From NCBI GenBank assembly GCA_000708835.1, contig DF237481.1, forward strand, positions 1 to 62,162: DNA of 62,162 bases. Direction: 5' to 3'. The stretch comes from Klebsormidium nitens (Eukaryota; Plantae; Klebsormidiophyceae). The position numbers were made by a program, and so were the translations under genes. Each line of letters starts with the position of its first letter. Position 1 is the stretch's first letter. Below are positions 19,201 through 58,826 of the stretch, piece by piece. The notes under the pieces were generated by a model, which saw nothing but the letters and a program-made list of their open reading frames with translations, did not search any database and had not been told where the DNA came from.

Positions 19201-22200
19201 GGCGAACACGTCTTCCGACACGTTGATCCCCTTGGATCCCTTGCTCATGCCGCCGCGGGTGATCGAGAACAGGCGGTCGAAGATATCCGGGTGCCCGTAG
19301 TGCATCCTGACGCGCAGCGGCGTCGCCATGACGCGCTGTGCCAACGTCACGAAGCTCATCTCCTGGAGGCTCATGAAGTAAGCGAGGCTGGAGACGGAGC
19401 CGGTGAAGATGTACTCGCGGAAGCCGATGACCGCGCGGTGCGGGCCGTCGCGGCCGCGCCCCGCGGTGATGTCCAGCTCCTCCAGCAGGTTGCGCATCTT
19501 GAACGCCTCCTCGAGGTTGCAGTCCTGAAGGAAAAGGCGGGAGAGCTTAGCTTTTAGAATCTTGGACGAGAGTTCTTTTTCTGTAACGGGACCTTGGCTG
19601 TTCTGAAGTTGTCCCGTGGTGAGGCTGACGTGGCAAGAAAGAGACGCTGCTCTTGAACTGGCTTCATGCGAGACCATAGTTTAACCCAGGAAAAGGAAAA
19701 CCACAAGAAGACTAGCTACCATTTCGATCGGTCTGACCATTGTTGCTGACGTAGATGCCACAAAAAGGGTTCAATCACTTTATCACAGTCGTAAAGGCAG
19801 CGAGTATGTTGAGACAGCTTCGGTCAGTGAGCACAGATTCTCCAAGAAAAGTAACCTGACTCATGCCGCCAAGATTCTCAGACGACATTCTGCTGTAGAG
19901 TAAGTCTTACTAAGATTTCTGGCTTACCTGATTCATATCGATCGCCTGCACGCCGTCTCCCCTGGTGAAGATAAGCGCGTGATTCTGGTTCTCGGGCTTG
20001 CCCTCGCCAATCCGCATGGGCCCCGGGAGCTGCACCCGGTAGACCTCCTCCTCCTTGCCGTTCTCCCACTTCATCAGCACTGAGTAGACCTTCTTGAGGT
20101 GCTTCCCAACGCTGTTGTAAGCGGGCAGGGGCACCTCGTCTTCATAGGCAACGCGGAGGAAGGGGTACCTGAATTGCGGAAGCACGAGTCAGCAGGGTTG
20201 GAAATGCAGAGGACATTTACTCTGGTAGAAGGTGGTGCTTCATTGGCAAGGGTGGATGAGACCAGGACCTGGTCATAAAGCTGGAAGAGAATCGATTCAG
20301 ATCAGAAAGCCTGATTCAGAAACGCTTACAGTTTCCGGTGTCTGATTGTGGCGCATTTGAAAAAGCTTCGTGCATCCCCGAATGCCTGTTGGTGCTCTTA
20401 GGAAGAGTACCGAAGAATTCAGTCAGGAATGTTGTTGCCGGTCAGCCACCGTGCATATAGATCCTGCCGAGCATATTCTGGAAAAGCAAGCGGTCAAATC
20501 TCAAGAAAGCCATACATGGTTTCCGTTCATGACTTTTGCAAGATTTGCAGACTGTTACCTCTTGAGCAACTCATGGATGTCCGCAACGCGGGGGTCGGCC
20601 GTCCGCTTCTCCTGTCCGTACGTCTGGCAGGACACGACGTGCGTGAACTTGGTCCGGATGATGGCCTGGATGGTCTGCCACTTGTCGGCCTGGACGGAGC
20701 CGGCGTTGGCGCCCTTGAACGCGGGGAAGCCTTTGCTCAACTCTGCAGAAAGAAAGTCAACAGATTTTCAGAGGTGATCTTTAGTGAGAAAAGGTGGGAG
20801 CGGGGCCAAGCACTTCACAGTTATCAGACTGGTTTTCAAATGCAATCTAAGGCTCACTTGTAACTAAGCCACGTCGATCGTAAAACTGAGACAAGTCATC
20901 AGGTTCATAAGCGGCTTCAACCAAAACTTCGCCGGTACGAGCTTCATCAAGCTTAAAACCAATCTGTTTTTGGCGTAAGTCTCTAAACGACCTCATTAGC
21001 TGCACATCAAGCATCTTCTCATTCTAACCAACACGAGCCTCGTGAAAGCGCAGGTACAGAAAGCGAAAAGAACCCCACACCTCGCACAACGCGCTCCAAA
21101 ACAGGTTCCCACTCACCGACTTGGCTGGCGAGGTCGAAGAACGCCTGCAGCTCCAGCGCGCGCACGTAGTACATCATGCCGCGCACCGTGCGCGCGAGCG
21201 TCTGCCCGCGGCACGACGCCCAGAGGCGCAGCTCCATGCCCTTGTTCTTGCTCCACGCCTCGTCCTCATCCATCTTGGTGCGCTCCAAAAAGTTCTGCCA
21301 CTCGTCGGGGTACACGTTCTGGAGGTAGAAGATGATGGAGAGGCCCTCTTCGTTCTCCTTCTTGAGCTGGCTCATGGTGTAGATGATCTCCTCCTTGTGC
21401 ATGGGAGTCAGCGTGCTGCAAAAGATGAAGAGTGGGTGGTTTGAGCGCTTGCAGCGGGTCTTCGCTTGTGTCAAGATGGTTTCTCAAAGAACAATCTGTA
21501 AGCGCGCCCCGCTCCGTTTCTTATTTTTCCGCTTGTTTGTCTCAAGAGTCAACAGCCACGCTGAGATCTGCTTCGTGGAGCCAAAGGAAGCCAACTTAGG
21601 GTCGAAGCTGTTCGATCATTCACGTTCTGTATGAGCGAGGAACTGCAACCGCAATAGAACTTCAGGAACTTTCAAGTGAATGAAGCACCTAAAGCTGCTA
21701 TTGGTAGCCAACTTCAAAGCATAAACAGACCCAAAACTTGCGGTTTTTAGAGCTGTCTTGGAATGAAGTGGTCAGAGCGAAAGACCGAGCTAATTGCGGA
21801 AAAAGCAGTGGAAGTAGTGCACTCACGTGAAGGGCACCATCTTGCGCACGGGCGGCGGGCTGGGCATGTCCATGAACAGGCTGTTGGTGAACCAAATGAT
21901 GCGCCGCCTGGCTTCGTCGTTGGACGGCTCGTTTGCGTTGCCGGGGACAGCTGTCAGCAGCACGTACAGCCGCTTGGCCTGCTCCAGGAAGGGTGTGAGA
22001 TCCTTGGGTGGGTACTCAATCTCGGGGAGCGGGTCCGCGCACGCCCACAGCTCCATGCCGTTGGCGCCGTTGAGCACGCCTGACTTCTGGAGGTCCTCTC
22101 TGCAGAGTGGGCTGGGTGATGTTAGAGGGATTTTAATGACAAAAAGTAGAGAACAGAGTTTCCTTGAAGTAATCCGCGGGGTGAGATTGCTTTTAGGGAG

Positions 22201-25200
22201 GTCTGAATGAGGTGCAGGTAAACAAGGTGGAATTGAAGCTGCTTGATGATCGTGGTAAGAGGTTCAGAGTAAAAACCGAATTGATATGCTTGCGCTTGGA
22301 AGCACTTTAACAAGATTATTTCCATTAAGACGAACAGAAGGAAGTCTTCCACCCTTCTCGCTTGGCTTGATCCTTCGAGACAGATGCGAAACTCGGAGCT
22401 TGTTCCTTCACGTTTACTAGCTTTTCTCCATTGAATCTGCTCAATTTCTTGTGTTCCGTTCCGTTCAATCCGCCGGACTCCGCTCACCTGATCTTGGTGC
22501 TGATGAGGTCGTGCAGCAGGACCTCGTACACGTCCTGCATCTTTTGGACCACGTCCGGCTGCTTGTCGTGCTTCGCGGGGCCCGAGATAAGCTTCACCAG
22601 CTCGACCACCTTGTGCAGCAGCTTGGGCACCATGCCCGTCTGGCACGTGCTCATGAACGTGCCGTCCGCGACCGAGTTGTCGATGATGTCGAACAGCGCT
22701 TGCAACACCCTGCGGCGCAGGAAAAAAGTCGTCAGGGGGCTGAGATTTCGGGGTCAAAATTCAGAATATGGCACGGAAGTCGTTGCTTGATTAACTCAGA
22801 GTAGATGCATGATGATGCATTTGGAAGCATGGGGACGAAATTTTCTCTAGAACCTCATCTAGCGGCGTAGTCCAGATGTGACCGGAAGCAGCACTTCTTG
22901 CAAGGATAACGTAAGGCGATCAGGAATCAGACAGACTGATCTATCTCTCAGCAACTTCTTCAGACATATGCTTCTTGGATTCCCGTTGTCGATTCTCCGA
23001 ATCAAAGAGAGGCACAGAATTCGAATTACTTGCAGCCAAAAGGGCCTCACCTCAGCTCCGCCTGCCCTGAGACGAGCGCCTTGAGCAGGATACGCAGCGC
23101 GTTGTACGCTTCGATGACCGCGCAGCGCATGAGCTCGTCCTGCGACAGCTGCTCCCACAGCTCTCTGTCCTCGCCCTTGTGGTGCGCGGCGTGCTGGACC
23201 GCGGAGTTGATCTTGCCGGCCAGCAGGAACACGGGCCACTGGATGACCGGCATGATGCCGGACGCGTAGGGCACCTGGAGCATCAGCATCTCCCTGCGGA
23301 GAAAATTCCGGGGTCAAATTTCAAGGAGCATTTCATCTTCTGCCCGATTTCAGGTCAGAAACCTGGGTTTGGAGTTTCGGAAGACTTTGAGAGATTGGTT
23401 TACAATTGGGACATCGAATACCAAACTTTTGGGGGCAGCTTTCGAAAACTGGATGCTTTTCGTCGAGTCTCGAAAAGTGGTGATGCCGGCGGCGGAGCTA
23501 GAGACGCGCTCGCCTACCAGCTTGATTTTAGCACGGACCACCTAAAAGCTTTGCAGCACTTCATTTTTTACAGTCTTCTTAGTTTCCGAATCAAGTTCTG
23601 ACCCACCAGGATTGCATCTGAATTTGGTCACGAGGGAGCTCAGGACTACTTCTGACTTACTGGTTGCTGATGATGTCCTCCTCCCGCATGCTGGAGATGA
23701 CGTCATTCCAGACTTGCGCGAAGATGGCGGAGCGGAGGTACTCGGTGGGGGGCGTCTCTGTGACCTTGAGGCGGGACTCCGGGATGGCCTCCAGAGTCTC
23801 CTTCTTGGAAGCCGCTGACGTTCTTCGCTTCTTTCCTTTCGCCTGCAGAGGAAACGACCCAAGATTAAGTGCGAAAGCACTACAGAATTTCCCGAGGTTT
23901 CCGCAAGGGGTACAGCTCTTCGCCTTCTTATTTTGTTAGCTAGGTGTCGCGGAGCCAAAGATTGATAAGCAAGCGATAAGAGAGTGATACCCAGTTAAGT
24001 CGCATGCGCAATCCATCTTCAAGCAGATAATATGACCTTCCTGAATTTTTGGCCTCGCGTTACGTACCCTGCGGTCGTAACTCCGGATTCAAGCACGAAA
24101 AGCTTTCTTTCGTGCCCGCGTTTCTCTGAATTTCCGAAGTGCCACCGCATAAATGAAGAAGCATTGATGCTTACCGCCGCATCCTTGCTGCCCTCAGCCT
24201 TGCTCTCCGCGTTCACTTCGTCGATCGCCTGCGACATGGCGGCCGCGGTGAGGCTCTCGAAGCGGGGGAGGGGCGTCATGGGCCCGTTGTCGGCCGCCGT
24301 CTTGAGCAGGTCGTTGGGGATGAGCTTCTCTTGCAGCTTAGCGGGCAGCGTGTTGAAGCGCTGGCGGACCACGGAGAAGGTGCGGATCTGCGGAATGCAT
24401 GGAATGATCATCAGACGTGCGCTTGATGGTCTTGTTGATGAAGGGGAAGTAGGAACGAACGAGAAATTGTCGAACTGCCAGACCTTCTCAGCGGTTCCGG
24501 AGAGTTTGATTGCTCAGAGGAAAGCAGATCCATACAAGGTCCCCTCGTAAAAGCCATACAAATTTCAGACAAGCCGTGTTTCTAGATGTCAGGGACGGTA
24601 CTGGTAGCCCAGCAAGCTGATTCAATAGGTTCTCAGGTTCGCCCCACTACAAACAACAGTTCCTCAGCGAGAGCATTATCTCAACGTCAGCATATCGGAA
24701 GCTTTATATTGAACGGAGGACCCAGTGTGCATACCTCGTGGTGCCTGCCGCGCGCGCCGACAAGGCCTCCCGTCAGCGCCGAGATGACGAAGTACCAGAC
24801 GGTCATGTCCAGGAAGTACACCAGGGCGATGGGCCCCCAAAGCGCCGCGTGGCCCAGGTAGTTCCGGCAGCCGGGGAAGATGTCCCACGTCTCGTAGTGG
24901 ATGCACGTGTCCCAGAGCGGCCGCGAGTTTCCGATCAGCGGCAGCACCTGGGTTAAGAAGTTGGTGTCAGGTCGTGAATATTGGTAATGCGTACCAGTTT
25001 TGAGGTTAGGGGTTAAGATAACACGACATCGGGTTGCTGTCCTACTGGAGAAGAAGCTCCACGTCTCGTAGTGGATGCACGTGTCCCACAGCGGCCGCGA
25101 GTTGCCGAATCAGCGGCAGCACCTGGATCAAGGAGTTGATACTTGATTCATGAATTAAGTTGGCTTTGATTCCTTAAGGTTTCTGGAGTTGAGGGTTATG

Positions 25201-28200
25201 CTAAGATTGGTTTCGTGCGGCTGCTTTGTTGGAGACTCAAAACCCAGGCTTGCGTGAAGAGGACGCTGAAGCAAGGTCAACAGAGAGGAGACGCTGAAGC
25301 AAGGTCAAAGGAGAGAAAACGCTTTGCAGCTGTGCTTACGTTTGAGCTTTCTTGCTTTGGAAGTGCAGATCCAGGGAATTTGCTGACAGAACTAATGGAA
25401 TTCGAAGGACTGGCAGGAATTGCTTTCTGGTTTGATGGATTGTACAGAGGTCAAGACAGCTTTCCGGTCTGTTGACTCGTTTGAGGTGAAAGGAGTTGAA
25501 AGACAACTATAGAGCCTAAGCGAAACGCTCACCTGGTAACGGTAGCTGAACGCGAACTTGACGGTGAAGGCGCACAGCCAGAAGAGCACGTACTTGCAGA
25601 CCGTGCTGAACTTCTCCTGCATGCCACGCCCGATGTAGGACCGCGGCTGCAGAGCACAAGAACGTCACCGTTAGAGAGGAACTCCATAATTGCAGTTGAA
25701 GGATTCGCAGCCTTGACAATCGAGCAGATTTTGCAAAATTGTTGCGGAATCTTGCGGAACCTTACGTGCCTAACGCCCGCTCCGACTTCTTTGTGAAGAC
25801 GAGAGCCTCAAGATAGAGCTGCTCAGAACCATGTAAAAAAAAGGAAAACCTTCTTTTCAGCCAGGCCACCGTTCCATTTCTAAATACTCAACTTATAATT
25901 TACCGAACTCTAAAGCACAATCCAAACAATGGATGCAATTAGCAACCTGACTCTGCCCTGAGTTGTCGTTTAAGAGCTTGTGCGAGATTTATCTTACCTT
26001 GGCCCACCACCAGATAGCGGTCAGCAAAATGTTGTCCGAGCTCTCCATGCGCCGCGCCATGCCGGGGGCAAGCGTCACGACGGCCGTCAGCAGAGTGGGC
26101 GCGAGGTACGCGGCGCACGCGAGGCGGTACAGGTTGATCATCTTGAGCTGGTCCGCATCCTTGGTGTTCCTGCATTCATGAGGGTACACGTTGACTTCAG
26201 ATTGGTTTGCAATTTTCGACCTGTTTGCATTTTCCTGATGTAGAACGAAATCTCAAAAGATGATCTTATCATTCTGTAAAAACGTCTTAGAGAAACTTGT
26301 GACGTTGGGAAACCAACTTCCTTCCGAAGTGTCGAAAGATAACTAGGATCTCATCCGTCCGAGTACAACGTCCATCCTCACGACCATTCGGCTTTCAGAT
26401 TGAGCACTTGAGCGTTCGGGCCAAGGAAGTAACTTTGACATTCTCTGCGTGCATTTTGCACATCACGCTCCTGTCCGGGATTCGCCAAACGGGAAAGAAG
26501 GAGAGCTCACATGAAGGTGTAGCCCAGGGCTCCCAACCAGGCGAATGACGCCACGAGCTTGAGCCACAGGCGGAGAAGCCACGTCTTGGGAACCCTCAAG
26601 AGGATGCCCCAGTGGGCCCAGATGTCTCCAATGGCTGCAACAGAAACGCAACAACGACATCTCAGAATCCAGGTCCATCAGAAAGAAAGCAAGAGTGCAG
26701 GAGCGATATCAGGAATTTATTGAGGTCAGCAGTCGTCAAAGACAAGGAGCCCCTGCAACGTCGGATGCACTGCGTCAAAGATCCGAACGTCATCTTCTTG
26801 ATGCTACTGTAGTTGTGAATTGACCAAGGGACCGCGCGCTAGGCCTCACCTTGGATGACCCGGAAAATGGCGGCCGTGATGAAGACGGTCAGGATCTTGT
26901 GGATGGTGCGGTTGTCGCCCAAGGGATACTCCCTGACGCCGATGAAGATCATTGCCTGCATCGACAAAAACAATTTGCCATAAGGTCATGACTAAGTGTA
27001 TAGTAGGGAGTACAGTGGGTTCTCCTTTGAAAAGCTCATCCGCTCTGATGGTTCTATCGACGCCTTGCTGCAAGCTTTTCACGTCCTCACACATCAGTCA
27101 AGCTCAGTCGTTGATATCAAGCAGCCTTCTCATTTCCTGAGATGTTTGTGCCTTCCTTCGCAGATCGAGAAAATTCTAGTGTATTCGAGCAAAAGCCTCA
27201 AGCTCTCGCTTCAAACTTTTGGTTGAGTTTGAGACGTCTCAGATAATCCAATCTGTGGCAAGTGGACTCAAAGATAGATGAACAGAATGGGTTTGAGAAT
27301 CAGGTCAGCTTGCAATCGTACACGCCCCGCTCACCTGGAACGCCATGACGTGGAAGATGACCAGCCGGTCAAACACCCTCACGATCTGGAACCAGGACCG
27401 CTTCTCGATGAACAGCTGCTTGCCGCAGTTGGCGTACACCTTCTGCAGGCGCGTCGGCACCACCTTCTTCGCGTTCAGTTCGGACAGCTCAGCGGGCTCG
27501 ACTGCGTCCGCCACCTTCTTCTTCTTCGACTTGGCGGAGATAGGGAGCGCGCTCATCGGGATCTGGCCCGAGAAGAAGGACTGCGCACGAGGGAAAAGGG
27601 CGGATTAGTATGTGAGTGCAAGCTTTTCTGCCGAAGCGATCAAAGCATGTGAGAAACTCTTTCAGCTTGGACAGGCTGGACACTTGGGGCAAAATTTTCC
27701 CGAAGGAAGGTGCTTTGAGCACAAGTTTAACAAACTTGGGGCAGAATTTCCCAAAGGAAGGTGCTTGCAGCACAGGTACAACGTTTCGGCAGACAAACAA
27801 TCCGGACGTTTTGCTTGCCTTTCTTGAACACGGCAAATGTAGACTAACATTGGTCAAAGAAAGCGGGTTCTTGTTGCAATCTCAAGATGACGTATGCTGA
27901 CGGACTCACGTCCTGGCTCTCAAAGGCTGCCTTGGGTTCCACCAAGGGCCAGCCCAGCTTGAAGCACTGGGACGTCCAGAAGAACTCGTTGAAGTCGTCG
28001 TAGTTGTTCCAGTTCTCGTTGGGGCAGTGGCCGGCGCTGTTCTTGAGCGCTGACGCCCGCACGATGTCGTACAGCGGCTGGATGACGTCACGCAGGAACA
28101 CGCGGCTGACGTTCGCGTCGGGTTTCTTCGTGCCCTTTACCACCTCAGCGCACTCTGCCGCCAGCTGCAGAGATTGAAATACTGTCAATGCGGGGAAGTT

Positions 28201-30904
28201 CTGGCGAGCCTAGTGGTGGGCTTCAGGAAACCTCTAAATCAAATAGAGACAAACCTTTGCGCTCGAAGCCTAGGTTCTGCAGATCGTTGCAGCCGTTTGC
28301 GCAGCTCGAATACTTTTGCAAAAGCCGCAGCTCAACGACCAAGCCACCTTTCAAAGGTCTGCTCAGACGGACACTGTCAGAGGAAGGATTCTTTGACAGG
28401 GAAGGATTCTCTGAGGAGTGAGAAAGTCTTGAAAGGATACTCACGAAGTGGAAAATGTAGGCGAGGCACTCAGGCATGAAGCGGATGTTGGCCGCCTCCC
28501 CCCAGATGGAGAGCCAGAGCGCGATCTGCACCGTCAGCAGCTGCGCATTCTCTGGCGTCGAGGGGGGCACGCTCGGCTTCTTTGTGTGGTACTTGCACCA
28601 GCCCCGGTAGTTCTCGAATACTCGGTCCGCAACTTGGATGATGGCAAGGGGGTCCAGCTGGAAAAAGAATCGTGCGGATCTTCAATTTCTAGGCTAGTAC
28701 GAGGACTTTTATGTACTGTGACACTGACGCCAACGGCATTTGTACACGCTGAAACAGGACGGCGATGCTGTGGGAGGAAGCTGGTTGTACTTGGAGAAAG
28801 CTCGTTGCATGACAGGCAACCTTCTGGTGGAACTTGGATTGCGCCAGCGATATGGTGCAAAGGTTTCGCAGAAAAGACAAAGCGGCTTCGAGTGAGAAAC
28901 GGAGCACCATAAGTGCAGAGGTGACTTAAGGGCAGACGCTGAAAGCCAAGAAGTCAGAGCAAAAGCCTGGACCAGATCCCACAGTGAGGCAAGACAGCTT
29001 GGTAGTGAAGACTTTTTGGAGGACTCCAGTCAGCTTTACAAAAGGAGCTTACCTCCGACTGGGTCTTTGGGCCGTCTTTCAACCTGAGGTGCGCAGCGGC
29101 TAGCTGCAGGATGACGGCCTCCCGCTGGTTCCTGATGTTATCAATCTGCAAAAGCAAGCAACTAGAAGCGTCAACATGCTGGTAAAAGAAATGCTTCTTG
29201 GCCCACATCATCAGCAAGATCTCTTGACAATCAAGCAACATATCCAGTTAAAGTGTAAGGAGGATGCTAAGGGCTGGCAAAGCTTGTGCTTGAGACAAGG
29301 TCAAAGAGGCTTGAAATGTCACCTGGAAGCCAAACAACGCTTGCAGAAAGTCGAAGTGATCCCACTCCGAGTTGAGCTTGCTCTCCACCGCCCCCGGGTA
29401 CTGCATGCCATTCGTGTTCCGGAGGGCCAGCATTGCCGCCTTGATCTGAAGAGGGTACAAAGAGCAAGCTGTCAGGATATGAGATAAGCAAGCCTCTCCA
29501 GGATTTGGCAAGGCTGGTTGACATAATTGACTCTCGTTCTCGCATGGCTAGCTGAATTGGAAGCTTGGTGGTGTCAACTGCACAGTCCTGTTTTCCTGCG
29601 TGTATCTTGCGCCATGAGGCTGGTCAGCTCACCTCAGGCAACATTTTGAAAGTCTCCTGCGATCCTGGTGCAAGCGGATCCAAGGGGAGGATGTTGAACG
29701 GTCGAAGGCTGGGGTCCCGGGCAGCAATCTTGTGTCCCATCTCGACAATCTGGAAAAAAGATACCAACGCGTTTAAAGTGGTGTGTTGTTCAAGCGTCAT
29801 TGCATAGCGTGCTCTCTGACTGCAACCATGTCAAAGGGGCAACAAGAAACAGAATCATCCTCAATAGAGAGGGTGTGGCCTTTTGAGGATGTGCGGTCTT
29901 ACCTCTGAAGGGACCCTCTGCCCAACTTCTTCCGCAACAGACGTGAGCACCTCAAAGAGCACACTTGTGGTGCCATGCAACTCACGGAGTTGAGCCCTGC
30001 AGAGATTGGACTGTCAACTTTCCAAGCACAAATGCTGAGCAGCTCATGCGCCTGCTTGGGCTGCTACAGCGCAAGTACATTCACAGCCTTTCAAAGGGAC
30101 CTGCTACATGAGTTGTTACCTGAGAGCATCTTTGTCTGCTGCTGACCAAAAGCAGCTTGCGAAGGAGCATCGAGGAAAATGCTTCTAAGTGGTACAGAAA
30201 TGGTGCCAGAAAGCCAGACTTTCAACCAGAAGCTGCAAAAACAAGCATTGTAGCGTGCACCTGTCCTTTGCTGAATGCTGCTGAAGTCCGTCAGCATGAA
30301 GGTTGCAGAGCTCTGCATACTCCATGATGAAGTGCTCCAGCTCCCCCTTATCTGAGTTCCTAACTCTTGCCTCCAATGTGGACCCCTCATCCTCATCGCA
30401 TCTGTTTTTTAGCGTCTGTTTGAATTGGACAACACCTCTTTCAATATTAGCTGGATCTGCTTTCTCTGCTTCCCGCAGAGCGTGCCTCCGGCCTGCAGGT
30501 ATGCAAATGCAGTCAAATCAGAGCTCAGATCTGCTACAACAACAATTGCTTGCAAAGTGCTGACTGACGAACAAGTCATATCTGATGAGCCTGTCCTAAC
30601 TTTCGCCACCTTTTCATGGCTGAAAGCACGCAAAGGTTCCGTTGCTCCCACATCTCTCAACCACTTTTGCTAACCAGCATGAAAACCCTCCCGCTAGAAC
30701 TTCCCGTCATCATAGATGCGACAGGTGTTTTGGACTTTTGAGCTTCTCAAACTCACATAGATATGCAACACGCGGCCTTTGCTCAGCAACATCCTCTGAG
30801 CATTTTAGGACAGGCGCCAAGTGCGCCAGCATGGGGGGGACATTCCATCCTGCCACAATTAGGACTGGCTCCCTGAAGTCGTCCCCGCCCCCTCCGTGCC
30901 CCAT
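13269..30904 (-). CDS. CALS: Callose synthase (1,3-beta-glucan synthase, GT48); 31 exons, ~1983 aa
   Basis: Exons 30757-30904, 30261-30492, 29903-29996, 29633-29749, 29323-29445, 29053-29145, 28445-28657, 27910-28164, 27335-27580, 26850-26955, 26511-26634, 25998-26169, 25533-25646, 24735-24947, 24175-24387, 23661-23842, 23051-23293, 22488-22709, 21827-22099, 21117-21415, 20559-20742, 19928-20168, 19200-19524, 18541-18770, 17793-17984, 16991-17239, 16633-16733, 16187-16289, 15625-15804, 14262-14480, 13269-13514; total 5952 nt, in frame. Motifs PRVAYLC (Vta1-like N-term), WGEAANIRFMPECL, EARRRIIWFTNSL, GEGKPENQNHA, HYGHPDIFDR, INVSEDVFAGFN, HHEYIQVGKGRDVG. The start codon is tentative; a probable 5' UTR exon lies near 32180-32300. 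Confidence 0.96.
14479..14715. repeat. ~113-bp tandem repeat containing three copies of the CalS exon-30 acceptor
   Basis: atctgcggcgaccagaaag at 14479 and 14592, atctgcagc at 14704; intervening aatccctcaattc..ttttcga..tctcctag..ggccagg is also repeated. Confidence 0.8.
15282..15468. repeat. Intronic ~72-bp tandem repeat followed by a 42-bp exact copy of the CalS exon-29 3' end plus donor
   Basis: accaccagaatt.ctggtctttcag..gtacacgaagaagaca appears twice (15282, 15353); cccgtaccttgcagaggcagaggaagatgaggatggcggcc at 15427 is identical to 15618. Confidence 0.9.
16578..16597. repeat. (GACC)5 microsatellite in a CalS intron
   Basis: gaccgaccgaccgaccgacc read directly. Confidence 0.9.
17316..17410. 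repeat. Intronic copy of the CalS exon-26 acceptor plus first ~28 codons (original 17152-17245)
   Basis: ggccgaagtagtgcatcttggtgccgat..gaggacagctggaactggagctggatgaa.tc.atgat.gcctgcgg is shared; 12 substitutions; the copy runs into a stop. Confidence 0.9.
18088..18240. repeat. Degenerate intronic copy of the CalS exon-25 acceptor plus first ~25 codons and upstream intron
   Basis: Copy translates LLTIVLYALLYSLLLLAMTRLEQKL versus LLIIVLYALLYSRLLLAMTGLEEEL; the flanking intron sequence (gg.ttaggaagcg..tcgattg..actc.aa) is also duplicated. Confidence 0.85.
25059..25126. repeat. Intronic copy of the CalS exon-14 acceptor plus exon 5' end (original 24885-24951)
   Basis: ccacgtctcgtagtggatgcacgtgtccca.agcggccgcgagtt.ccga(a)tcagcggcagcacctgg; 2 substitutions plus a 1-nt insertion. 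Confidence 0.92.
25262..25308. repeat. Intronic tandem repeat, 28-bp period
   Basis: gacgctgaagcaaggtcaa at 25262 and 25290. Confidence 0.85.
27682..27779. repeat. Intronic tandem repeat, 52-bp period
   Basis: acttggggca.aatt..ccc.aaggaaggtgctt..agcaca.gt at 27682 and 27734. Confidence 0.85.
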
Positions 30905-33296: not shown

Positions 33297-36200
33297 ATGG
33301 GCCGGACTCCCAGTGAACGGCCCACTTCCGGAGCCGGCAAAAGGACTGCCGACGACAAGAGCGCCGCGCGGTGGTTCGATTGGCAGGGCCCCAGTAGCAG
33401 CCAGAACGGTAGGCCCCGCACTGCTGACGTCAGCAGAAACAGAGGTGGGAGCGTGCGGCTGACGGTGATGCAAGCAGCGGCAGCCCAAGCGGCGGCGGAG
33501 GCTCAGGTAAACGTTCTTGCCTTTGTCAGAGCCGTGAGAATTGTTAAACAGGTACGAGTCTCTTTGACTATGCAAGCGAGCTTTTGCTTCAGAACGACAG
33601 GACTCCAGCTGCGTCATGCGCTTGGGTTCTCATCGTGGTAAATGCGAAGCTTCATCAAGCAGCTGCTAGTCTGCATGGAGAACTTCTGCGTGAGTTCTGC
33701 GTACTGTTGCTTGAGGTACGTATGCCCGAGAAAAGCATCCGCAGTAACTCCTCCAATAGGATGGATGTTGCAAAACATCGTTCCCCGTTCACTTGTTTCA
33801 CTCAATTACATGATGGATGTATCTTAGCTCTTCCTTGCCTTTCAATGGATTCCTCGCTTGATGCGTCGTATTCGTATTCATTCTTTGCGTTCGACGTTAT
33901 ACCAGGCAGCTTAGTCGGAGGCTGATCCGAAAACCGGAGTCTGCAGCCCGCTTGCAGATTAATCACCTCGCCAGGGAGCTTGCTCGACGCACAGACATAA
34001 GCGGCTGCATTTGAGAATTCTTGTCTCTTACGTGCGCGGCTCTTTTGCACGGACCTTCTATCGAGAAAAGACGCGAATTTTCTCAGCTTAAACAAAGTGG
34101 GTCGTCTGGCTTATGGTACGCAAAAGCTGTTGCGCATGCATAAGAAGGGCCTGCATACAGAATACTCGTCCCTGAATGAAGATCTAAAAGAAGAGAGACG
34201 TCAATGCCAACATCTGTCGTTTGGACCCATCCTTGCTTGCAGGCGAACGCGGTGCGCAACGGGCTGCCCCACAAGGGCGCCACGTCACCCAAGTCTGGGC
34301 TGCACCCGGCGCTCCTTTCTAACGACCAGAACAACTACAAGCGGCGACACGGGCTGGACCTTCAGACAACAAAGTAAATTTCGGCGTCGATCCAATCCTT
34401 GAGAGACGCTCGGGTACCAACCGGTGGTGGGGTTTTTGGGACTAAATTACATGAGCGTGACGCTGTTTGAATGCCATAAGACGGCAGTAACTGGAGGTGG
34501 ACCTGATCAGCTCCCCAATCTTTTTATCCGAGGCAGATCGAAGCTGCCATTCTTAGATCTTTCAACTTAACAAACAGGCACAGTTCCGTCCACGCTTGTC
34601 CAGCTTCACGTAATGTCTGACGGGGCACACTCTGTTTAAGGTACTAAAAGACAAACCGTGGCTTTGTCCGGAGCTGAGCCGCCACTATCCTACCCGGTGC
34701 GCTGCTGCCGTCGCGTTTCCTTCAATTGCGGGATGTCTCGCTTACGTTGCTGACGTGTATTGTCACCTTTTTCCAGGGTCAGCCGCCAGTGGTCGCACTC
34801 GGGGCACTTCCCCGGGATGACGCTCTCGTACTGGGCGCGCCGGTGCAGCAAGCTGTGGGACTTGAAACCGGTTCTGTAAAAATCATATCTTGCCGGAATA
34901 TGCCGCCTGGCCCCTGTCCCGCACGCTTCTGACGTGTAATTGTCACCTTTTTCCAGGGTCAGCCGCCAATGGTCGCACTCGGGGCACTTCCCCGGGATGA
35001 CGCTCTCGTGCTGGGCGCGGGGCTGCAGCAAGCTGTGGGGCTGCGACCACGGGGTCGGGGACGAGGAACTAGATCGGCAGCTCGATCTGCCCGAGTGGGA
35101 GGGCCGCGGGAACGATCCGTCCGTTCCGGAGTGGCTCCGTTACGAAGGTCAGTGGGAGAAGCGGCGAGCTCCAGACTTGAAGCCCCAGAAACCATGGGGG
35201 CTGTAAGAAGGCGGATTTTGGCCGCTCCGCAACAAAGCGCTGCTTGTCAGCCTAATAAAATTTCGTCGCTGGGCAAACTTTGAAAAGTCGGACACTGTCA
35301 GGGCCATTCCAACGACGAAAGCCACCTTTCTGTCTCAAATGGATGTTGTCTAATAGAAAGATACAAAAATTACAGGAAACCAGATCAGCAAAGGAAGGGT
35401 AATCGACCCAGTCACGCGCTTCAGCATTACCAACACTCAGGCCCGATTTCCTCGCAACAGGAAATTGTTGAAGATTCTCAGGCCGTTTCCCGTGACAGTT
35501 CAACAACGAAATGTTGACAAATCCAACCCCGTTTTCCGAACCCATTCCCAAACCTCCCGCTGTAACCGCAGGCAAGATCGTAAACCGGAAGCTCTCCAAG
35601 CGCTTCGTCCTGGGGTTCTGCCACCACGTGTGGGACTACAAATATCCCCCGCCGTTGATCATCGAGATCAACGGCGTTCCGACGCCCGTGAAGCGCGAGC
35701 CGCGCCACGGGGGCCTCAGCCTGGCCTTCCACGAGTGCATGAAAACCACGTGAGCAAGCACATGCATCGATTCTGCTTTTCCTTTCGGACGGCGTCATCT
35801 CAGTGCGGTTGAGTTCTATGGTCGACCGAAGTGATCAAAAGCCAGAGTTAGGCGCCGGTGGCTCTCTTGTTGGGTTCCCACCTCCGAAGTCACCTCCGGA
35901 AAGTCACGTTTTTGTTGCGACCTTTTGAGCTCCCGGCCTCTAAGGAGCCCTCAGAAAACAGGCTTGCGTTTCGCGAAACCATTGCAGGAATCGCCGGGCT
36001 CGAACCTGCGACCATTACGTTAAAAGCCCAATGCTCTGCCAACTGAGCTACGCACCCGTACATTCAAAATATACGTCTTCGTTTGAATGTGTTAGGGTCA
36101 GGTGGATTGCTGCGGTTTTTCGCGAGAGCGTTGAGGAATATATTGCAGGACGCCTCCGTGGTTATGCAAGAGTCACTATAGAACACTCAATCAAGCATCC

Positions 36201-40329: not shown

Positions 40330-43300
40330 TTAAAGTCGATCCACCGTCTCAGTAACGCCGCCATGCCCGAGCAACGTCTGCCGAGCCTCCCGGAAAACCC
40401 CCCGCACTCGTTCTTCCTTCAGCCGTACGTTCTGCTCGCGCAGATATAACCGGTCCCCGTCCGCCCACCCGCCCCTCCATACGCTCCCGGTGTCCGCCAT
40501 AACCGGGTCGTCCAACGCGTACTTATCTAGGAGGCTGCTCTCCGCAGCCTCGATCTCATACGCTATGTAGTGTAGCCCGTGTTCACGTGCCGGCATTCCG
40601 TCGTACACCTCGGCAACGCGCCGGACGCCCCAGGGGACCACCTGCGTCCGGAAGATGACACGTGGCGTTGAGTCGAGAATCGAGCGAGGCAATCTGAGGA
40701 GACTATGGAGAAGCGTGGCGTGCTTCAAGAGGGTGTATGCACAACCCTGTCTCAAATGGAGTCAGAGAGCGACCGTGAGACGGCCAGCTTGCTCCCGCCA
40801 AGGAACAAGAGGCAAGAGTCTATCCACGTCGGGGCGACTTTCAAGTTCAGCATCCGTTTGTACGGTCGCCGCGTGCTCACACAGTTAACACGCCTCCTTC
40901 AAATGAAGAAACAACACACAAAATAAATAAAGGTTCGAGGAGAGTTCTGATGCGCATTGAACAAAGAGGAGACCCGTCGTGATTTGCACGTAGAAACAGG
41001 GGCACAAACGTTCCAGAAAGGAATGAGCGGAGGGTGGTGGGATAACAAAGCGGCAAAGCTTGCTTTCGCAAGAACGGGCACCCACAAAAGCCATGGCGCG
41101 CGCCCCGATTCACTAATGCCAGAGCCAGAGCGGTTTCAAAATATTCGGGACCGCAAACTCGCGGTACCCACCTGGATGAGCGCGGCCCCCGGGCGCATGA
41201 AGACGAAGTACGTCAGCGCCGCGCCGTGCACGCCCATCAGGACGTCCAAACCCTGGACCGTCCGAAACACCTCCTGCAAAAGTTCGGACGCTTCATTAGG
41301 CACATCTTCTGGGGGTCCGGAAACTAGAGCGAAGCAGCTTGAGCGGTGGATGCACATAGATCGATTTCAGCGATCGTGCACGCCCATCCGGACGCCAAAC
41401 CCTGCATCGTCCGAAACACCTCCTGCAAAAGTTCGGACGCTTGGGTAGGCGCAGCGTGGAGGCTCCAAAACAAGGTAAGCGAATTGAGCGGTGCGTTCCT
41501 AAAGTTTGGATTTGAGCCGAAGGTCGGTTGAAAGAAGCGTCCGCTTGAATTGAACAAAGTCCCGGTTTAAATCCGGTTTGAAAGGCAGTCTGCTGGACTT
41601 CGCAGACAGGGGATAGCAGCTGCGGCCTCTAGTATGTTTGCAACGCTACATCGAATGTCTCTGATACGATCCTCTTTGGTTGATGTAAGAAGCGAAGTCT
41701 TGAGAATTGAGCGCTCTTGAAATGAAGCTGCGGGAACGAATTTGTAACAAGCGGACCCTCCAAACAAGATACTAAGAACCTCGCCTTCTTGCTGGTTCAA
41801 GAGAAAGGAGAAGGGACCAGTAAATGCCGGACTATCGTGACAGCCATCTAGATAAATATCTGCTTAAGGGCCCTTGTAAAGACAAAGGATGGTCGAGTGG
41901 CGTAAAGTGAAGGTCCGTTGAACACTGACGGATTCCGTGACAGAGCTTTAGATGGAGAAGGGAAGCAAGCAAAGGTGGAGCCAGTTATCTGCGAGAGCAG
42001 ATGAAGCAAACGAATCCAAAGGGTAGATGAAGCAAGATCAACAAGAAGGAAGGTGGAGCGAAGGGATCAAGGGAATTGGGAGCAAACGGAATGAAAGGAA
42101 AGAGTAAACCAATGATCTAAGAGAGAGTTTCGAACAAACGGAGTAAGAGAAAATTCGAGCAGATGAAACAAGGAAAGCCTCACTTCTAAGCTGGGCGACT
42201 CGTACGAGAACGACAGCTCCTCCACTTGGAACCCCTCCTCCTCCGCAATCTGCGCAACCCGGTCGTGGTTTTCGATAACCCGACCGGAACCGTTCCTTCG
42301 CACAATCCCCATCCGCAGCTTCCTTTGCCCGCTCAAACCCGTTTTGTTAATCCTAGTAGCCGCCTCCTGCGAGGAGTCTTGTGCGTCCGCTTCACCTCGC
42401 AACTCACCATTCTCAATCGGGCTGCCGTTGACCTGATTCCCCTCGACCGGCGTATCCTTGACCCGGTTATTATCGACCCGGTTATTGCTAACCATCCCCA
42501 GATGCTGCGCAAACATCTCGCTCATACGAGCCAACCGTACACCCCCCGGCATCCGCTCCGGGTCGACGGTCAAATACCCATGTATCTCTAACCCCACTGT
42601 TAACCGCTCTAAACACCAGCTAACCCCGCCTTCCCCCAGGTTCACCAGCGGGAACTCGGTGAAGATCTCCAGAAACCGCTGGTATTTCCGAAGCCACGGT
42701 TCAGGGGCGTCAGAAACGAAGAGCCGAACTTTGCGGTGATATCGCTCGGTAGATACGAACAGGGGGATCAGAACATCGGTAAACTCGTGGAAAGCGTTGC
42801 CGGTCCACCCCCCCGTGGAGAAGACGATGCCGGGGACGTCGGACACGTGGTCGCACTGGGGGCTGCCACGTGGCTCAAGCTCCTAAGATGGAGATGATGC
42901 TCGTTAAGGGTCGAGAGAGTCGTAAGGATGACTATCACTCAGGATTGTGGAGCGTAAGCAGTTTCTAAGTTGGCATCGTTCTTCTGAACTTGTTACGTTT
43001 TATGGCCGAACTCCGAGATGCTTATTGTGTCACTGATGATTTGCTTTCGGAGAGGCTTGCGTGGATTTATTGTGCAGTTTGTATGACCTACTCAAGATGA
43101 TTGCTCCAGTCGGTGGACCTGCGTATGCACCCACTTGCACGTTCTTCCACACCAGCTCAAACACCTAATACGGATGGCCATTACGTCCGCACCGAAAAGA
43201 AGAGCGCACTTGAAATGAACAGCACAACAGGTATACGCAATTTCCTAACCTTAATTTCCTAACTCCCAACTTTACCCAGGTCTCAGCAATCTCACTTGCG

Positions 43301-45722
43301 CGCTCTTGGACACCAGCTCGAACTCCGAAATGCGCGCAGTCAACATGTCAATATCCAGAAAACAGCGCAGTCAAAACGTGAGGCTTGACAAGTGTAAGCA
43401 GCGCAGCACCAAAAAGATCTTCCCCTTAACATTTCCATTATATCACAGCAACTCGCTTGCACGGTCCTGAAAGTCATCTCGTACTCTTTGATCGGGCAGG
43501 CATCATGTTCGCATTTATAAGATCAGCACGATGAAAAAGAACGGCTTGTTGCGCAGCACCCAGAATAAGGCAAACTCCAATTATGTCAAATGTCTCAAGT
43601 GGCGCAACTCACTTGCATATTCTTTGATACCAACTCGTACTCCGTGATCCGAGCAGCCATCATGTCCGCATCGTACTTTCTCGGTTGCGGCCGGACGCGC
43701 ATCGACGGGCCCAGCGGCTCTTCCCTATGCGTGTACACTTCCACCACAGTGGAACCGGTCTGGATTCGGACCGTCCCGTTCAGCCGACAAACGTCCGTCA
43801 TCCAGGAGCTCCTGTCGCACCCAAACTCCTCTTTGGGGGCCTCCTCAAAAGTGAGATCATTTGTCACAGACTCGTGGGTGCTTTCCTTCTTCGGGGCCTC
43901 TTCTTTCTTGGGGGTTTGTTTAGGCGTCGTTTCCGCATCTGCACCGCTAGGGACCTCTTCATCTTTGGGGGTTTGTCTGGGCTTCGTTTCTGTGCCCCCC
44001 TCGCTGGGGCCCTCTTTTGTGGGGGCTCCACCGTAGTGCTTTTGTTGCCCCTCGCTGCTGGCCCCTTTTTCTTCAAGTGTTTTGTTGGACTCACTTGGCA
44101 ACCCAATACTGCCACTGGCTTCTTTCTGGGGGGTTTTGCTAAGCTCTTCCGGCATACCCCCCTGGCTAGAGGGATCCCCCTGAGTGGGCTCCTTCCCTTC
44201 CCCCTCGCTCCTTCCTCCGGCAGGACCCCCCTGGTCTCCTTGCCCTGCTTGTTCTTCAGAATGCTCCCCACTACTTGGTGTGGATTGAACAGAACTTGTT
44301 GCATTGATCCCCATCATCTCTGCGCTTCGCTTTACTCTGTCAGAGACGGACCCTCCTTTTGACTCTTCTTTGTCCTGGCTCGCTGCCTTGCCCTTCAAGA
44401 GAGGTGTGTCAGCGTTACTTGACTCCTGGCTTGGCTTGGGGCTTAACCCAAAACTCAACTCCATTCTTGTCCAGTCTGCTTTTCCCACACGTCCATTGCA
44501 CAGGGATGCTTGTCCCCACCCCTGGAACAGCTGCCATGACCCGCACTCTCCTGACATCATCACTGGAACAGAACAAAAACAGATGTCAGAGAAATGGTTG
44601 TGGAGTGCCGGTTGGAGAAATCTGGTTCAGCTCATGCATGATTGGCACTTGCACCTGTGTGTGAAAGAAATGGTCAATAATGTATAAATGCTCCATATGC
44701 AGATAAGTCTTGGCAGTTTTTTCTGTGCGGAAACCCAATGTTTTGAGCTTGAAGATTCACAGATGTTAGGTGGAAATACCAAGTACAGTCGTTTGTTGCA
44801 AGCCCTAACGAGCATGACTTGTTTCCCCCCTCGCTCCCGTCAGCAGCTCAATCAAATGAAGCATGCATTTGCAAGCACTCCATTCAGCAAGCGGGCCTCG
44901 TACAAGACATTCAAGCGGTTCGGAAATCATCGAAGCAGAGGTGGGCATTCAGCGCCCAACTAGGATTGCACGCAATGCATTCGCCACATGCCAAAATGTT
45001 ATGCTGTCTCCTAGATGATGTGACAAGCAATCTGATGTGCTGCCAGCATGAGTCGGAAGACACGAAAAGACCAGCGCGTGAGTTTTTGGCTCACTCTATC
45101 CAGACACCAGACCTGGGGGAGTCCCTATCATTTCTACAGTGTCAACATTCAGTTCCCCTGGATAAGGTGATACTTTGCTACATTGAGTTGAACTCTTATT
45201 ATCAAGTTTCCTGTCACCACAAGAAGCATTTCCTTCATCAAAGATGACAAATTGTTTGAAATCTACAAAGAAACCCGACTGCTTGGTTCAACCCCACTCT
45301 GCCTGTCCAGATTCCTAAGGATCAGCTCCTAGACAAATAGCGCATATCCGGGGAGTCCCCCTCAAAGCCCACAGCGGGCAGCTGACGACATCAGAAGCTA
45401 AAGTATACACATAGGTTCATGGCGAAGCTTGAAGAATCACACCATCACATCAGCAGCTACAGATTAACAGCTTGAGAAGTGCAGCTACTAAACATCTGGG
45501 GAACACTCTTTTTTATTCAATCTTCTTCTATTTTCAAGTGTTCTGAGCTGCGAGTACCCTCAGAAAAAGAAGGGGAACAAGAGGGCAGGGGAAGTGAGCC
45601 CTACATGACCCAGGGTCCTCATTTGCAAGCCTCTTGCCCAGCAGAATGCCCCCCACAATCAAGACTAAGATCAGCACCTGTATGCCCAGTAGTAGCTTGG
45701 GCTTCCTTGTACAGATCTTCAT
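40330..45722 (-). CDS. Glycosyltransferase family 61 (DUF563), plant xylan arabinosyl/xylosyltransferase-like type II membrane protein
   Basis: Exons 40330-40641, 41172-41273, 42184-42882, 43613-~44560 and an N-terminal TM exon starting at 45722 (MKICTRKPKLLLGIQVLILVLIVGGILLG). Motifs FSTGGWTGNAFHEFTDVLIPLF and VLMGVHGAALTYFVFMRPGAALIQ|VVPWG. The junction between the first exons is not resolved. Confidence 0.88.
41375..41442. repeat. Intronic copy of a GT61 acceptor plus exon 5' end (original 41225-41293)
   Basis: cgtgcacgcccatc.ggacg(t)ccaaaccctg.a.cgtccgaaacacctcctgcaaaagttcggacgctt; 3 substitutions plus a 1-nt deletion. Confidence 0.9.
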
Positions 45723-55044: not shown

Positions 55045-58000
55045 ATGCTCAGGCATTCCGTCCGGTCCTTTGTCAGGGCCGGTCGGTCGCTCAGATTGCG
55101 GTATGCAGATGCTGGGGAGGGGGGGGCGCCTGCGCTCGTGAGCAAGGAGGAGTTGAAGAAGGAATGGAAGAAAGTGGCCCCGAACCTTGATCTCCCAAAG
55201 TTTCCCGGCGATCTGCTACCCGCCAGACAAGAAGTCCCAAGCTCAATCCCTGAGAAAGTGACCTTGAACTTCCTTCTCCCTCACGACAGCCTCTTTGAAA
55301 AGGAAGAGGTGAGTGCTGGTGGTGGAAGATGAGAAAGTGCAACTATTGTTGGGATCTTGCTGTTGTTGCTGCATTGGCGGAAGTTTCCGGTTACGCTCAC
55401 GTATGGAGAAGGGTTTCAGCCTTCCTGATACACAGGGATGGAGAAGCTGATCGCCAAATTGGCATTGCATCCTGTGTTCAGCCGTACGGTCAACTGCAGA
55501 GATATCGTGGCACAAGTTGAAGAAGGAAACGCACAATGTGGCCAGGGCTTAACTGGCACTCCACATTGGATGGCTGTAGATTCTCACTATTGAAGTCACC
55601 ATTATCAGAAACTCTTATATGTGCCCGGCTTTCACTAGGTTTGCTGGTGAATGCTTTGGATTGCTTCGTCAGTGCATGCACCAACCTGCGCATCCAGCAG
55701 AAATCATAGAGCAAACTGTGCGGCTATGATCCTAACCCTAGACAAAGGTCTGACGGGTGAATCCCCCTTGAATTTAGGATTAATGTACTCATGGGATAAT
55801 TCGAGCACATTACCAAGTCACTTGAAGAGAAGCCAGATTACTTCTTTCCCTTATACTCTTTGCTTCTCTTCTTGCTCGCCTGTCCTTTGTTCCCCTCTTC
55901 TCTCCCTTCCATCGTAAACATCAATAAAATCACCAATCAATGCAAGTCTGGCTAACCTTTGCGAAGATCCTCTCACGTGGTTTTCTGCGTCAGCATAATG
56001 CTAATCACCTCTTAACGACACACCAATCCAGCACCCGTGCTGAGAAAGAATGCACTGATCAAGCCTGTTGGCTGTTTGTCCCCCGCTTCTCTATGCTTCG
56101 ATACAATTGAGCGCGCACTAACCAAAGCCACAAGTCTTGACGTTGGCAATTCAAGCCAGTCTTTCCGCCACACTGGGCACCCCCTCTGGATACATGCTAA
56201 GGGAGTACACAGTGCCAGCTCCACTGCGCACTCAACGAGCTAAACACGATTTAACCGTGCACCAACCCATCCCTCCACCACATTCTTCCACCAACAGATC
56301 AAGTGATCCTCCGCGCCACCAGTGGCTAGATGGGCCTCCGCCCTGGACATGAGCAAAACTTGAGTACAATGTAATCGTGATCCAAGCTAACGAAGCACCA
56401 AACAAGCTTAATATGTTTTGACTAAGCACTAATCCAACCACGTCAACAGGTGGACCAGTTATCCTCCCTTCCACCACCAACCCAGGGCGTGTCCGCCTCA
56501 ACGCGTGTCAACCGAGTCTTGATCAAACAGTAATCATGGCCAACTTAACAAGGCATCAGCCAACTCAAGTACCATGCGCTAACCCAGCCTTGACCAACTT
56601 CGTTAAGCAGGTGGACCGAGCCATCCTCCCCGCCACCCCCGGCCAGCCGGGAATCCTCGCTGAACATGTTACTACCTCTATAAGTGTGGTTTCATCGATT
56701 TTACCTCGTGAGCACTATTTAATCTTTTGACCAATGTGCTAACCCAAGCGTTGACCAACGTGGTTACCAGGTGGACCAAGTCATCCTCCCCGCCACCACC
56801 GGCCAGACAGGCGTCCATGCGAAACATATGGCGAGCTTCTTATCAAGGGAACAGTGACTATACTTATCAACTCTGTGGGGCATTCTGGGGCAGTTCAGTT
56901 TACAAATATCCCTTGCAAGCGCTAACCCTGCCTTAACCGACTTGGTTACCAGGTGGACCAAGTCATCCTCCCCGCCACCACCGGCCAGATGGGCGTCCTC
57001 CCCGGCCACGTCCCCACTGTGGCGCAGCTCCGGCCAGGCCTGCTCGAGATCTCCAAGGACAGCGAGATCACCAAGTTCTTTGTTAGCAGCGGCTTCGCCT
57101 TCATCCACGCGAACTCGGTGACCGACGTGATCGCGGTCGAGGCGGTGCCCCTCGACAGGTGTGTGCGCTTTCTCATCTGGTTTGTCTCCCCGGTGTTATC
57201 CTTTTGCTTGCATCATCCAGCCGTTTCCCCATTGTTCTGGTTGGGATTGAGGGCGACATCCCCGCAAACTCGGTGACCGACGTGATTGCGGTCGAGGCGG
57301 TGCCGCTCGACAGGTGCGTGCGCTTCGTTATGTTGTCGTCTCCTAATTGGCATCCTTTTGCTTCCGGTTCTGAACCGTCTTCGTTCCTGATTTGATTGTT
57401 GGTGAGGCTGACTCGCTTCTAGAGGTCTTATCACTTCGCTGTGGTGTCATTTCCATTCCTTGTTGGCTCCGAGTTCCATGGCTTCTGTGGTGCTGCCTTT
57501 GCTCTCGGGAAAGTGCCATCCAGACAGGTCCGCGCACTTCGTTGAGGTTTTTCGTTTCTTTTTTGCGGTTTGTTTGTATTCAGTGCTTCCCATTGCTGAT
57601 GTCATCAAGATGAAGGAGGTCCCATCAGACAGGATCATGCTGGTTAAGGCACTGCAAACCCAACTCTGGACATCCCTTGTCAACGTTAAGTCTGCATCTA
57701 TGAAAATTTTGCTTCTAATTTGCCCTTCTATAGTCTCCGCTCTAACTCCTAAGCACACGTTAAACACTTTAGGTGCCTCTTCAATCCTTTGCCCGTACCA
57801 GCGAGGCTTTTATGCTGGTCAGATTTGCGAGCAATCAAAGTCCTTTCGGTTTCCAATTTGAAGTTTCTGGCGACCTTTTACAATTTCTGGTTGAAGCCTT
57901 CTCATGCACTCTTGACATGACGTGATACACGTCAACCAGTCTGTAAGTGCGTACCCCTTTCGCTTCCACGACTCCTCCTGCTTCGGATTCAGTGGTTCGA

Positions 58001-58826
58001 TAATCCTCGCCTGATCTTATGCATTGGTCGAAACGGATCTCTCAGGCAAGACCCATCAGGAATGGTATCACCGTCATGCTTGGTTTGCTATTTATTATCT
58101 CTCCAGCTTCTGTGTTAACTTGGTCTCCGCAAAAAGTTAAGCCTTCTGGTGCTTTCTCGTCTTAGCACCTACATCAGAAGGACACGTTTGATGCAATTGG
58201 CAGGGCAGGATGGTTCCAGACAGAGTGTGCTGATTGCAGATTTGCGCCCAGCATTTGGTACTTCTGGCTCAGATCCTGGCCTTTAGCTGCGGATGTCTGC
58301 ACAGTCTAAAAGGGGCAAGCTTCGGATTCAGTGTTGCTTTTATCAATTGATCAGCATGGAGTCGCTTGGGCGCGCAGATCAACGGTTTTCCAGGGCAGGG
58401 CGCCTATTTTAAGGCAGGGCGTCGAACGGCTTTATTGTAACCAGTCTCTCTTGGTAGATCCGGATGCTCTCGTCGATGTATTCAGGCGCATCGAGACAAA
58501 TCACACGAGGGAAATAAGCGTGTGTCAAGATGCTTCCATCGTTCCACCCGATTTTGTTGCAGCTCGAAACCCGATTGACAGGACAAACGGATGTTCTCAT
58601 TCAGCATACAAGAGCCTGGTTCTGAAGTCGTCTGTGACAATACTTACACGAATGCTCGTTTTTAACACTGCACCTTCGTTCCTGCAGATTGGACCCTGAG
58701 GAAGTGAAGAAGGGCCTCAATGAGTACGTCGCAAAGCTTGCTGCTGCCGAGTCAGATGAGGATAAGGCCGAGGCGCAGATCGGTCTTGAGGTGCACAGCG
58801 CTATGAGCGGGGCGCTAGGTGTGTAG
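55045..58826 (+). CDS. ATP5F1D: Mitochondrial F1-ATP synthase delta subunit; 3 exons, 202 aa
   Basis: Exons 55045-55308, 56953-57158, 58688-58826 (609 nt). Sequence [17 protein letters not shown]|[59 protein letters not shown] matches plant F1-delta. Confidence 0.96.
56290..56857 (+). repeat. Four progressively degenerate copies of branch point, acceptor and 5' end of ATP-delta exon 2
   Basis: Acceptor-like AG at 56769, 56609, 56448 and 56296 versus the real one at 56951. The three nearest copies are followed by gtggacc..atcctccc..ccacc, with gctaacc or actaatc upstream; the 56296 copy starts mid-motif (atcaagtgatcctcc). Confidence 0.9.
57263..57640 (+). repeat. Copies of the ATP-delta exon-2 3' end plus donor in the following intron
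   Basis: 57263-57325 is near-identical (3 exonic substitutions). Degenerate copies lie near 57512-57540 (gtgccatccagacag|gtccgcgcactt) and 57595-57634 ([13 protein letters not shown] versus [13 protein letters not shown]). Confidence 0.8.

Follow-up and report, generated by a model that had tools for sequence, protein, structure and literature searches.

The stretch of DNA analysed here, called the window below, comprises 62,162 nucleotides of Klebsormidium nitens contig DF237481.1. It carries on its forward strand a three-exon gene encoding the delta subunit of mitochondrial ATP synthase, with the Pfam domain PF02823 in exon 2. The gene was searched exon by exon, and its layout is as follows. 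Exon 1 (55045..55308) has 88 codons from the ATG and ends at a donor GT at 55309; RNA contigs cover it together with its joint, and its orthologue in L022, a contig of a close relative (SRR23617307), is 97% identical in amino acids and 90% in nucleotides. Intron 1 (55309..56952) is a phase 0, GT-AG intron of 1644 nt. Exon 2 (56953..57158), also present in RNA, encodes the PF02823 β-sandwich (E 2.8e-16). Intron 2 (57159..58687; 1529 nt, phase 2, GT-AG) is retained at about 1–2% of depth in three RNA runs. Exon 3 up to the stop (58688..58826) has an RNA joint and an orthologue in L028. The same three-exon structure is found in the RNA and in the relatives, with no new intron between duplicated AG/GT sites. 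Protein hits to the sequence are plant-like, which fits Klebsormidium nitens. An exact look-up of the exon-1 read-through ORF gave no match, and a scan of metagenomes returned only distant relatives, with protein identities of at most 72%.

Within intron 1 are four or five dead copies, of about 160 bases each, of the start of exon 2 together with its splice site. A sequence-only reading of the window had listed five AGs of which only the last leads into the full exon. The AGs were found, starting at 56296, 56448, 56609, 56769 and 56951, with spacings of 152, 161, 160 and 182 nt, and the complete domain-encoding exon indeed follows only the last of them. All units are on the forward strand. W1 (56250..56353; AG 56296-56297) is missing the 4 bases with which the exon begins and carries the in-frame TAG noted in that reading, a CAG to TAG change at 56327-56329. 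W2 (56412..56508; AG 56448-56449) has the reported 1-nt deletion, about 7 nt past its AG. In W3 (56569..56670; AG 56609-56610), the first codons translate as [12 protein letters not shown]. W4 (56727..56830; AG 56769-56770) had been described as identical to the exon over 12 codons and matches it for 37 nt, that is, 12 codons and one base; the identity with the used junction spans 47 nt in all (56761-56807 and 56943-56989) and makes this segment a candidate conversion tract. W5 (56916..56952) is the functional branch region and acceptor AG (56951-56952), with a weak polypyrimidine tract. The branch-like CTAAC or CTAAT ascribed to every unit fails for W1, which has none within 45 nt of its AG. 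A probable sixth and oldest copy, W0 (56109..56188), has lost its AG and lies about 147 nt further upstream than W1, at the expected period; it is the only extra nhmmer match and a weak one (local E 0.008, window-wide E 0.32).

The units are 47–77% alike and form an array of direct, adjacent, head-to-tail copies of a local segment, which occupies the last 655 nt of intron 1, or 40% of the intron (49% with W0). W1 to W4 each score above every shuffled-query control. Tandem Repeats Finder did not detect the array. That the unit might be a dispersed repeat was checked with an nhmmer profile, which found no other copy in the 62-kb window.

The array copies are silent in the main transcripts. The RNA joints of X13 and X15 connect the donor at 55309 to position 56953, at a depth of about 1000; joints of exon 1 to W1, W2 or W3 were not seen in the RNA contigs, and no RNA contig holds the W4-specific tail. 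An apparent joint to 56769 in X5 was considered as alternative splicing and rejected, as the contig terminates there, its last 30 nt falling within the 37 nt common to W4 and W5. Logan contigs lose rare isoforms, and nonsense-mediated decay (NMD) could mask use of the copies. Splicing to any copy would lead to a stop after 2–39 codons, so that rare use of these border-spanning units and their pseudo-sites is possible and could be hidden by decay. In position weight matrices (PWMs) built on about 35 splice sites, the used acceptor, W5, scores 0.7 against a mean of 8.1 for the 34 acceptors of the window, and the copies score 0.5–4.8. Since the last AG is the one used in the main transcripts, though it scores no better than the copies, it is position that decides, and not strength.

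Exon 2 is also followed by a donor-side copy, missed by the sequence-only reading. This segment (57257..57410, forward strand) is a head-to-tail repeat of 57102-57256, contains 57 nt of exon end and 98 nt of intron start, and is homologous across the entire period (z 3.7), as are three other copies. Its GT at 57314 is unused, although the copied donor, 155 nt downstream of the used one, has a PWM score of 11.1 versus 9.7. The exon-adjacent site thus appears to win on both sides of exon 2, as exon definition would predict. Intron 2 contains no copy of the exon-3 acceptor.

Other parts of the window show the following. A callose-synthase-like gene, named from sequence motifs (13270-29445, reverse strand, 27 exons), has acceptor copies at introns 9, 20 and 21 and donor copies at intron 25. 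In the same gene, 14473-14717 holds a repeat of 113 nt with only about 8 exon bases. The segments 17152-17245 and 17316-17409 match perfectly over two runs, of 29 and about 27 nt, which flank a patch with about 40% divergence; such a mosaic is of the kind that gene conversion leaves. Junction copies are also seen in a RopGEF-like gene (763-5125, reverse strand; offsets 139 and 82), in a glycosyltransferase-like gene (41172-43989, reverse strand; offsets 149; 156 and 317) and at an unnamed exon (34734-35042, forward strand; offset 181, 91% identity over 130 nt). The segment 60660-60950 is AT-rich, with many short inverted and direct motifs, and resembles a transposon terminus or MITE.

The array is not special to the essential ATP synthase delta gene, as the window holds about 12 duplications that span a junction, this one included. 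Our model of the window has 35 introns in four genes, all GT-AG and with consistent phases, and 9–10 of them carry copies of their own borders. In the callose-synthase gene, introns without a copy have a median length of 351 nt, and those with one acceptor copy measure 553–585 nt; an intron grows by one period with a copy. Copy counts per junction are overdispersed (maximum of at least 4, P ~0.007), so that further copies seem likelier once one exists.

The exon-derived parts of the copies decay neutrally. In the nine nearest copies, substitutions at the three codon positions number 17:15:32, versus 3:1:22 in orthologues. The former counts fit 1:1:2, the pattern of release from coding selection, and on this comparison we rejected capture from a diverged allele, with its exon conserved and its intron diverged, as a general cause. 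With this pattern and with stops after so few codons, the array copies are without the traits of alternative exons. On the intron side, several copies are homologous through the whole period (z 2.7–6.0 versus other junctions), and roughly half of all copies show no detectable homology in the far intron part. Within the array, the spacers of W1/W2 and of W2/W4 are weakly homologous, those of W3/W4 lack significant similarity, and whole-period homology of W4 is weak (z 1.7). Given the dissimilar W3/W4 spacers and the far intron parts without homology, duplication with filler DNA is possible.

The arrays are specific to lineages. At the orthologous intron, which the earlier reading had singled out for comparison across species, copy number does vary: L022 carries three or more copies at this acceptor up to the end of its contig, which stops short of the functional exon, and the distant relative (L023, L025 and L027; exon 2 about 82% identical in nucleotides) has none at the exon-2 acceptor. 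The units of the window and of L022 pair in order in a global alignment, and their tails group by species, the L022 tails sharing a motif that is absent from the window tails. With this motif difference, the L022 copies would either have originated after the split or have been homogenised. At the exon-3 acceptor, which has no copies in the window, the distant relative carries 3–4, with periods of 111–136 nt. Arrays at different junctions in the relatives indicate that the process acted independently within one gene.

The exon-3 acceptor arrays of the distant relative, L023 11570-12287 and L025 11625-12395, come from one metagenome sample. The gene is about 97% identical between L023 and L025 up to the array, and the arrays barely align. 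L025 has only this gene in common with L023, differing 3′ of exon 3 and in both flanks; it has Ty3-like pieces downstream. Array hypermutation was considered from this pair and is not established, as the divergence of L025 is also raised 3′ of exon 3 and its flanks are different. An old haplotype or a paralogue explains the gap as well as fast turnover does.

The explanation that we think probable is a neutral, self-reinforcing array of head-to-tail duplications that straddle the junction, extended and partly refreshed by misaligned exchange. Each period would hold about 100 nt of intron tail followed by some 60 nt of exon head. The junction would first be copied by a local duplication, about 150–180 nt in length. 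The spliceosome would then take the last AG, or the first GT, beside the intact exon, leaving the mRNA unchanged, as seen in the main transcripts, and the intron longer by one period. The spare exon head, freed from coding selection, would decay, in line with the substitution counts above. Finally, the copy beside the junction may promote misaligned exchange, which would add further periods, some of them from older copies, and short gene-conversion tracts may reset similarity around the junction. With misaligned exchange and conversion, identity would drop away from the exon only roughly and would not date the copies. Much of what the sequence-only reading had proposed is kept in this scheme: repeated duplication of the same junction, older copies lying deeper in the intron and silence of the copies in mature RNA are all supported.

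It is tempting to go further and to propose an active, junction-directed process that copies roughly nucleosome-sized pieces, with the exon part refreshed by recombination; we offer this as a tentative idea, possible rather than probable. An alternative is that the mutation itself is targeted to junctions, breaks or template switches preferring exon borders through chromatin or co-transcriptional splicing. Each event would then copy the junction as it stands, by synthesis that is error-prone or adds filler, the intron side would differ from birth, and no later conversion would be needed. Self-comparison of the window gave 15 local duplications, of which 12 span a junction, versus the 21–29% predicted by geometry (P <1e-4). 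This excess still has P <0.01 with the visibility of interior copies halved, but it is marginal or gone at a four-fold visibility bias (P 0.02–0.12). The window periods of 164 ± 14 nt also speak for targeting, whereas some short units of the window (68–113 nt) and the periods of the distant relative, given above, speak against it. The intron side of the copies is about 31% substituted in its first 25 nt versus about 18% predicted, individually so in 4 of 10 copies. In favour of conversion, the combined P across the same number of copies is ~1e-5 for over-conservation of the exon side and 6e-5 for long perfect runs, in tests whose exon-part ends were picked by eye and whose copies were detected via the exon side, which favours the conversion result. 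The excess divergence of the intron side would follow either from conversion of the exon part or from error-prone synthesis at birth, and detection via the exon side produces a bias in this direction too. The sharp difference between the exon-3 arrays of L023 and L025, so alike upstream, would also agree with targeting, but L025 may be a mosaic or a paralogue and the divergence perhaps old. Targeting leaves unexplained why W3 and W4 have derived states in common (see below), and on balance we hold it to be rather unlikely.

Under a stricter model, every event would independently copy the working junction, and the copies would age by position. This is the ladder that the sequence-only reading expected, and it is partly borne out: the near pair resembles the used junction more closely than the far pair does, and decay is strongest in W0. 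The order is nevertheless one of two tiers and not monotonic, the identities to the used junction being 0.75, 0.75, 0.59 and 0.64 for W4, W3, W2 and W1, so that W3 equals W4 and W1 exceeds W2. Likewise, the tree of the units, which rests on about 110 nt, is star-like rather than a ladder; it has no well-supported branch and joins W3 and W4 weakly (80/86). Plain 1:2 decay fits about half of the window's single copies, but in W4 the 37-nt perfect run adjoins a stretch of 23 nt with 11 differences (P 0.003 if decay were uniform). In addition, W3 and W4 share five states in the distal head (P ~0.013). Three of these are at non-synonymous positions at which the outgroup has the functional state; it follows that the changes arose in a copy. 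W4 combines W3-like flanks with a centre identical to W5, at few informative sites, and looks like a sister of W3 whose centre may later have been overwritten from the working junction. This pattern suggests duplication of copies from copies plus gene conversion, and the strict model appears improbable.

Still harder to sustain is the proposal that the copies are functional, kept by selection as ratchet points for recursive splicing at AG/GT or as decoy acceptors linked to NMD. Exon 2 starts with GT, so W2 to W4 are AG/GT sites, and the exon-derived parts are kept better than plain decay predicts. Moreover, exons starting with GT occur at 3 of 6 acceptors with copies versus 2 of 29 without; put the other way, 3 of 5 GT-starting acceptors carry copies and 3 of 30 others do (Fisher P 0.03, post hoc, small sample). 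Against this, the regenerated donor scores 0.3–0.9, where true donors score 0.8–14, and the GT is deleted or changed, with the AG kept, in W1 (56298) and in two of three L022 copies (3545 and 3726), two of these three changes being 4-nt deletions. Recursive splicing is unlikely with a regenerated donor so weak and a GT so often lost. The distant relative, as noted, does without copies at this acceptor, and joints to W1–W3 were not seen.

The array was also compared with independently assembled reads. DNA contigs of X3 over 55916-56687 and 56838-57366 have zero differences from the window, and a contig of X5, an RNA run of another study, has one difference over 56397-56798; among the contigs listed, none crosses 56799-56837 or the whole array. 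The X5 difference is a G to C at 56491, in W2, in a low-depth contig. Two X3 DNA contigs run partly off the stretch, with about 240–255 unrelated letters before 56164 and 57232, perhaps short repeats common to other loci. No strain variation of the array was seen among the four runs. An assembly artefact is highly improbable: W4 and W5 do share 47 identical bases, at which short-read contigs break, and no single piece spans the array, but the units differ from each other by 25–40%, contigs assembled separately in two studies agree and a relative has a similar array.

Intron expansion is usually ascribed to transposons and small insertions. The arrays described here point to a way of intron growth that is apparently undescribed. 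One copy means about 165–200 nt extra on a 350-nt intron, and 40–49% of intron 1 is such DNA. They also amount to a natural experiment in how splice sites are chosen, one that opens exon definition and positional choice to direct testing in a streptophyte alga: 182 nt upstream of the used acceptor lies an ignored one that matches it over 47 bases, and a better-scoring donor is ignored 155 nt downstream. If conversion refreshes the copies, similarity is unusable for dating them. A junction-directed process, if true, would be a major undescribed route of intron growth and a lasting source from which latent splice sites and new exons could be drawn.

Several known systems share features with these arrays. 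Tandem duplication of exons gives rise to mutually exclusive exons, in which whole exons with both splice sites are duplicated and stay under coding selection. The array likewise places exon-derived copies in an intron; its copies, in contrast, are partial heads with neutral 1:1:2 decay, frameshifts and stops. In intron 7 of human F7, a 37-bp VNTR (IVS7) contains silent 5′ pseudo-sites (PMC1557585). There, as in the array, the tandem unit spans an exon–intron border, the pseudo-sites are silent and the exon-proximal site is chosen. F7 IVS7, however, is one donor-side minisatellite of near-identical 37-bp units, whereas the units of the alga are 150–190 nt long, 25–40% decayed and mostly on the acceptor side, and about a quarter of introns carry them, at junctions that are specific to the lineage. 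Intron gain by tandem genomic or internal gene duplication, in which duplication of an exonic AGGT segment creates a new intron (PMC3265369; reviewed in PMC3443670), is similarly intragenic, includes splice signals and leaves the protein intact; in the alga, it is an existing junction that is duplicated, no new intron arises and the old intron gains one period per event. Recursive-splicing AGGT ratchet points are strong, conserved motifs in long introns (PMC6110457). The array resembles them in having intronic AG/GT sites upstream of the true acceptor and differs in its weak donors, lack of conservation and spacing of about 160 nt. Introner elements and intronic transposons (PMC9860276) add intron DNA lineage-wide from one dispersed family, while here each unit copies its own local junction and none is found elsewhere in the window.

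A literature search that covered few subscription journals turned up no account of such arrays, whether for Klebsormidium or, at this scale, for anything else. Neither the F7 precedent nor that of intron gain by tandem duplication covers arrays of decaying 160-nt junction copies that affect about a quarter of introns. The ATP synthase delta locus adds a comparison of splice strengths, a codon-position test, evidence against a simple ladder and a swap of the array junction between relatives.
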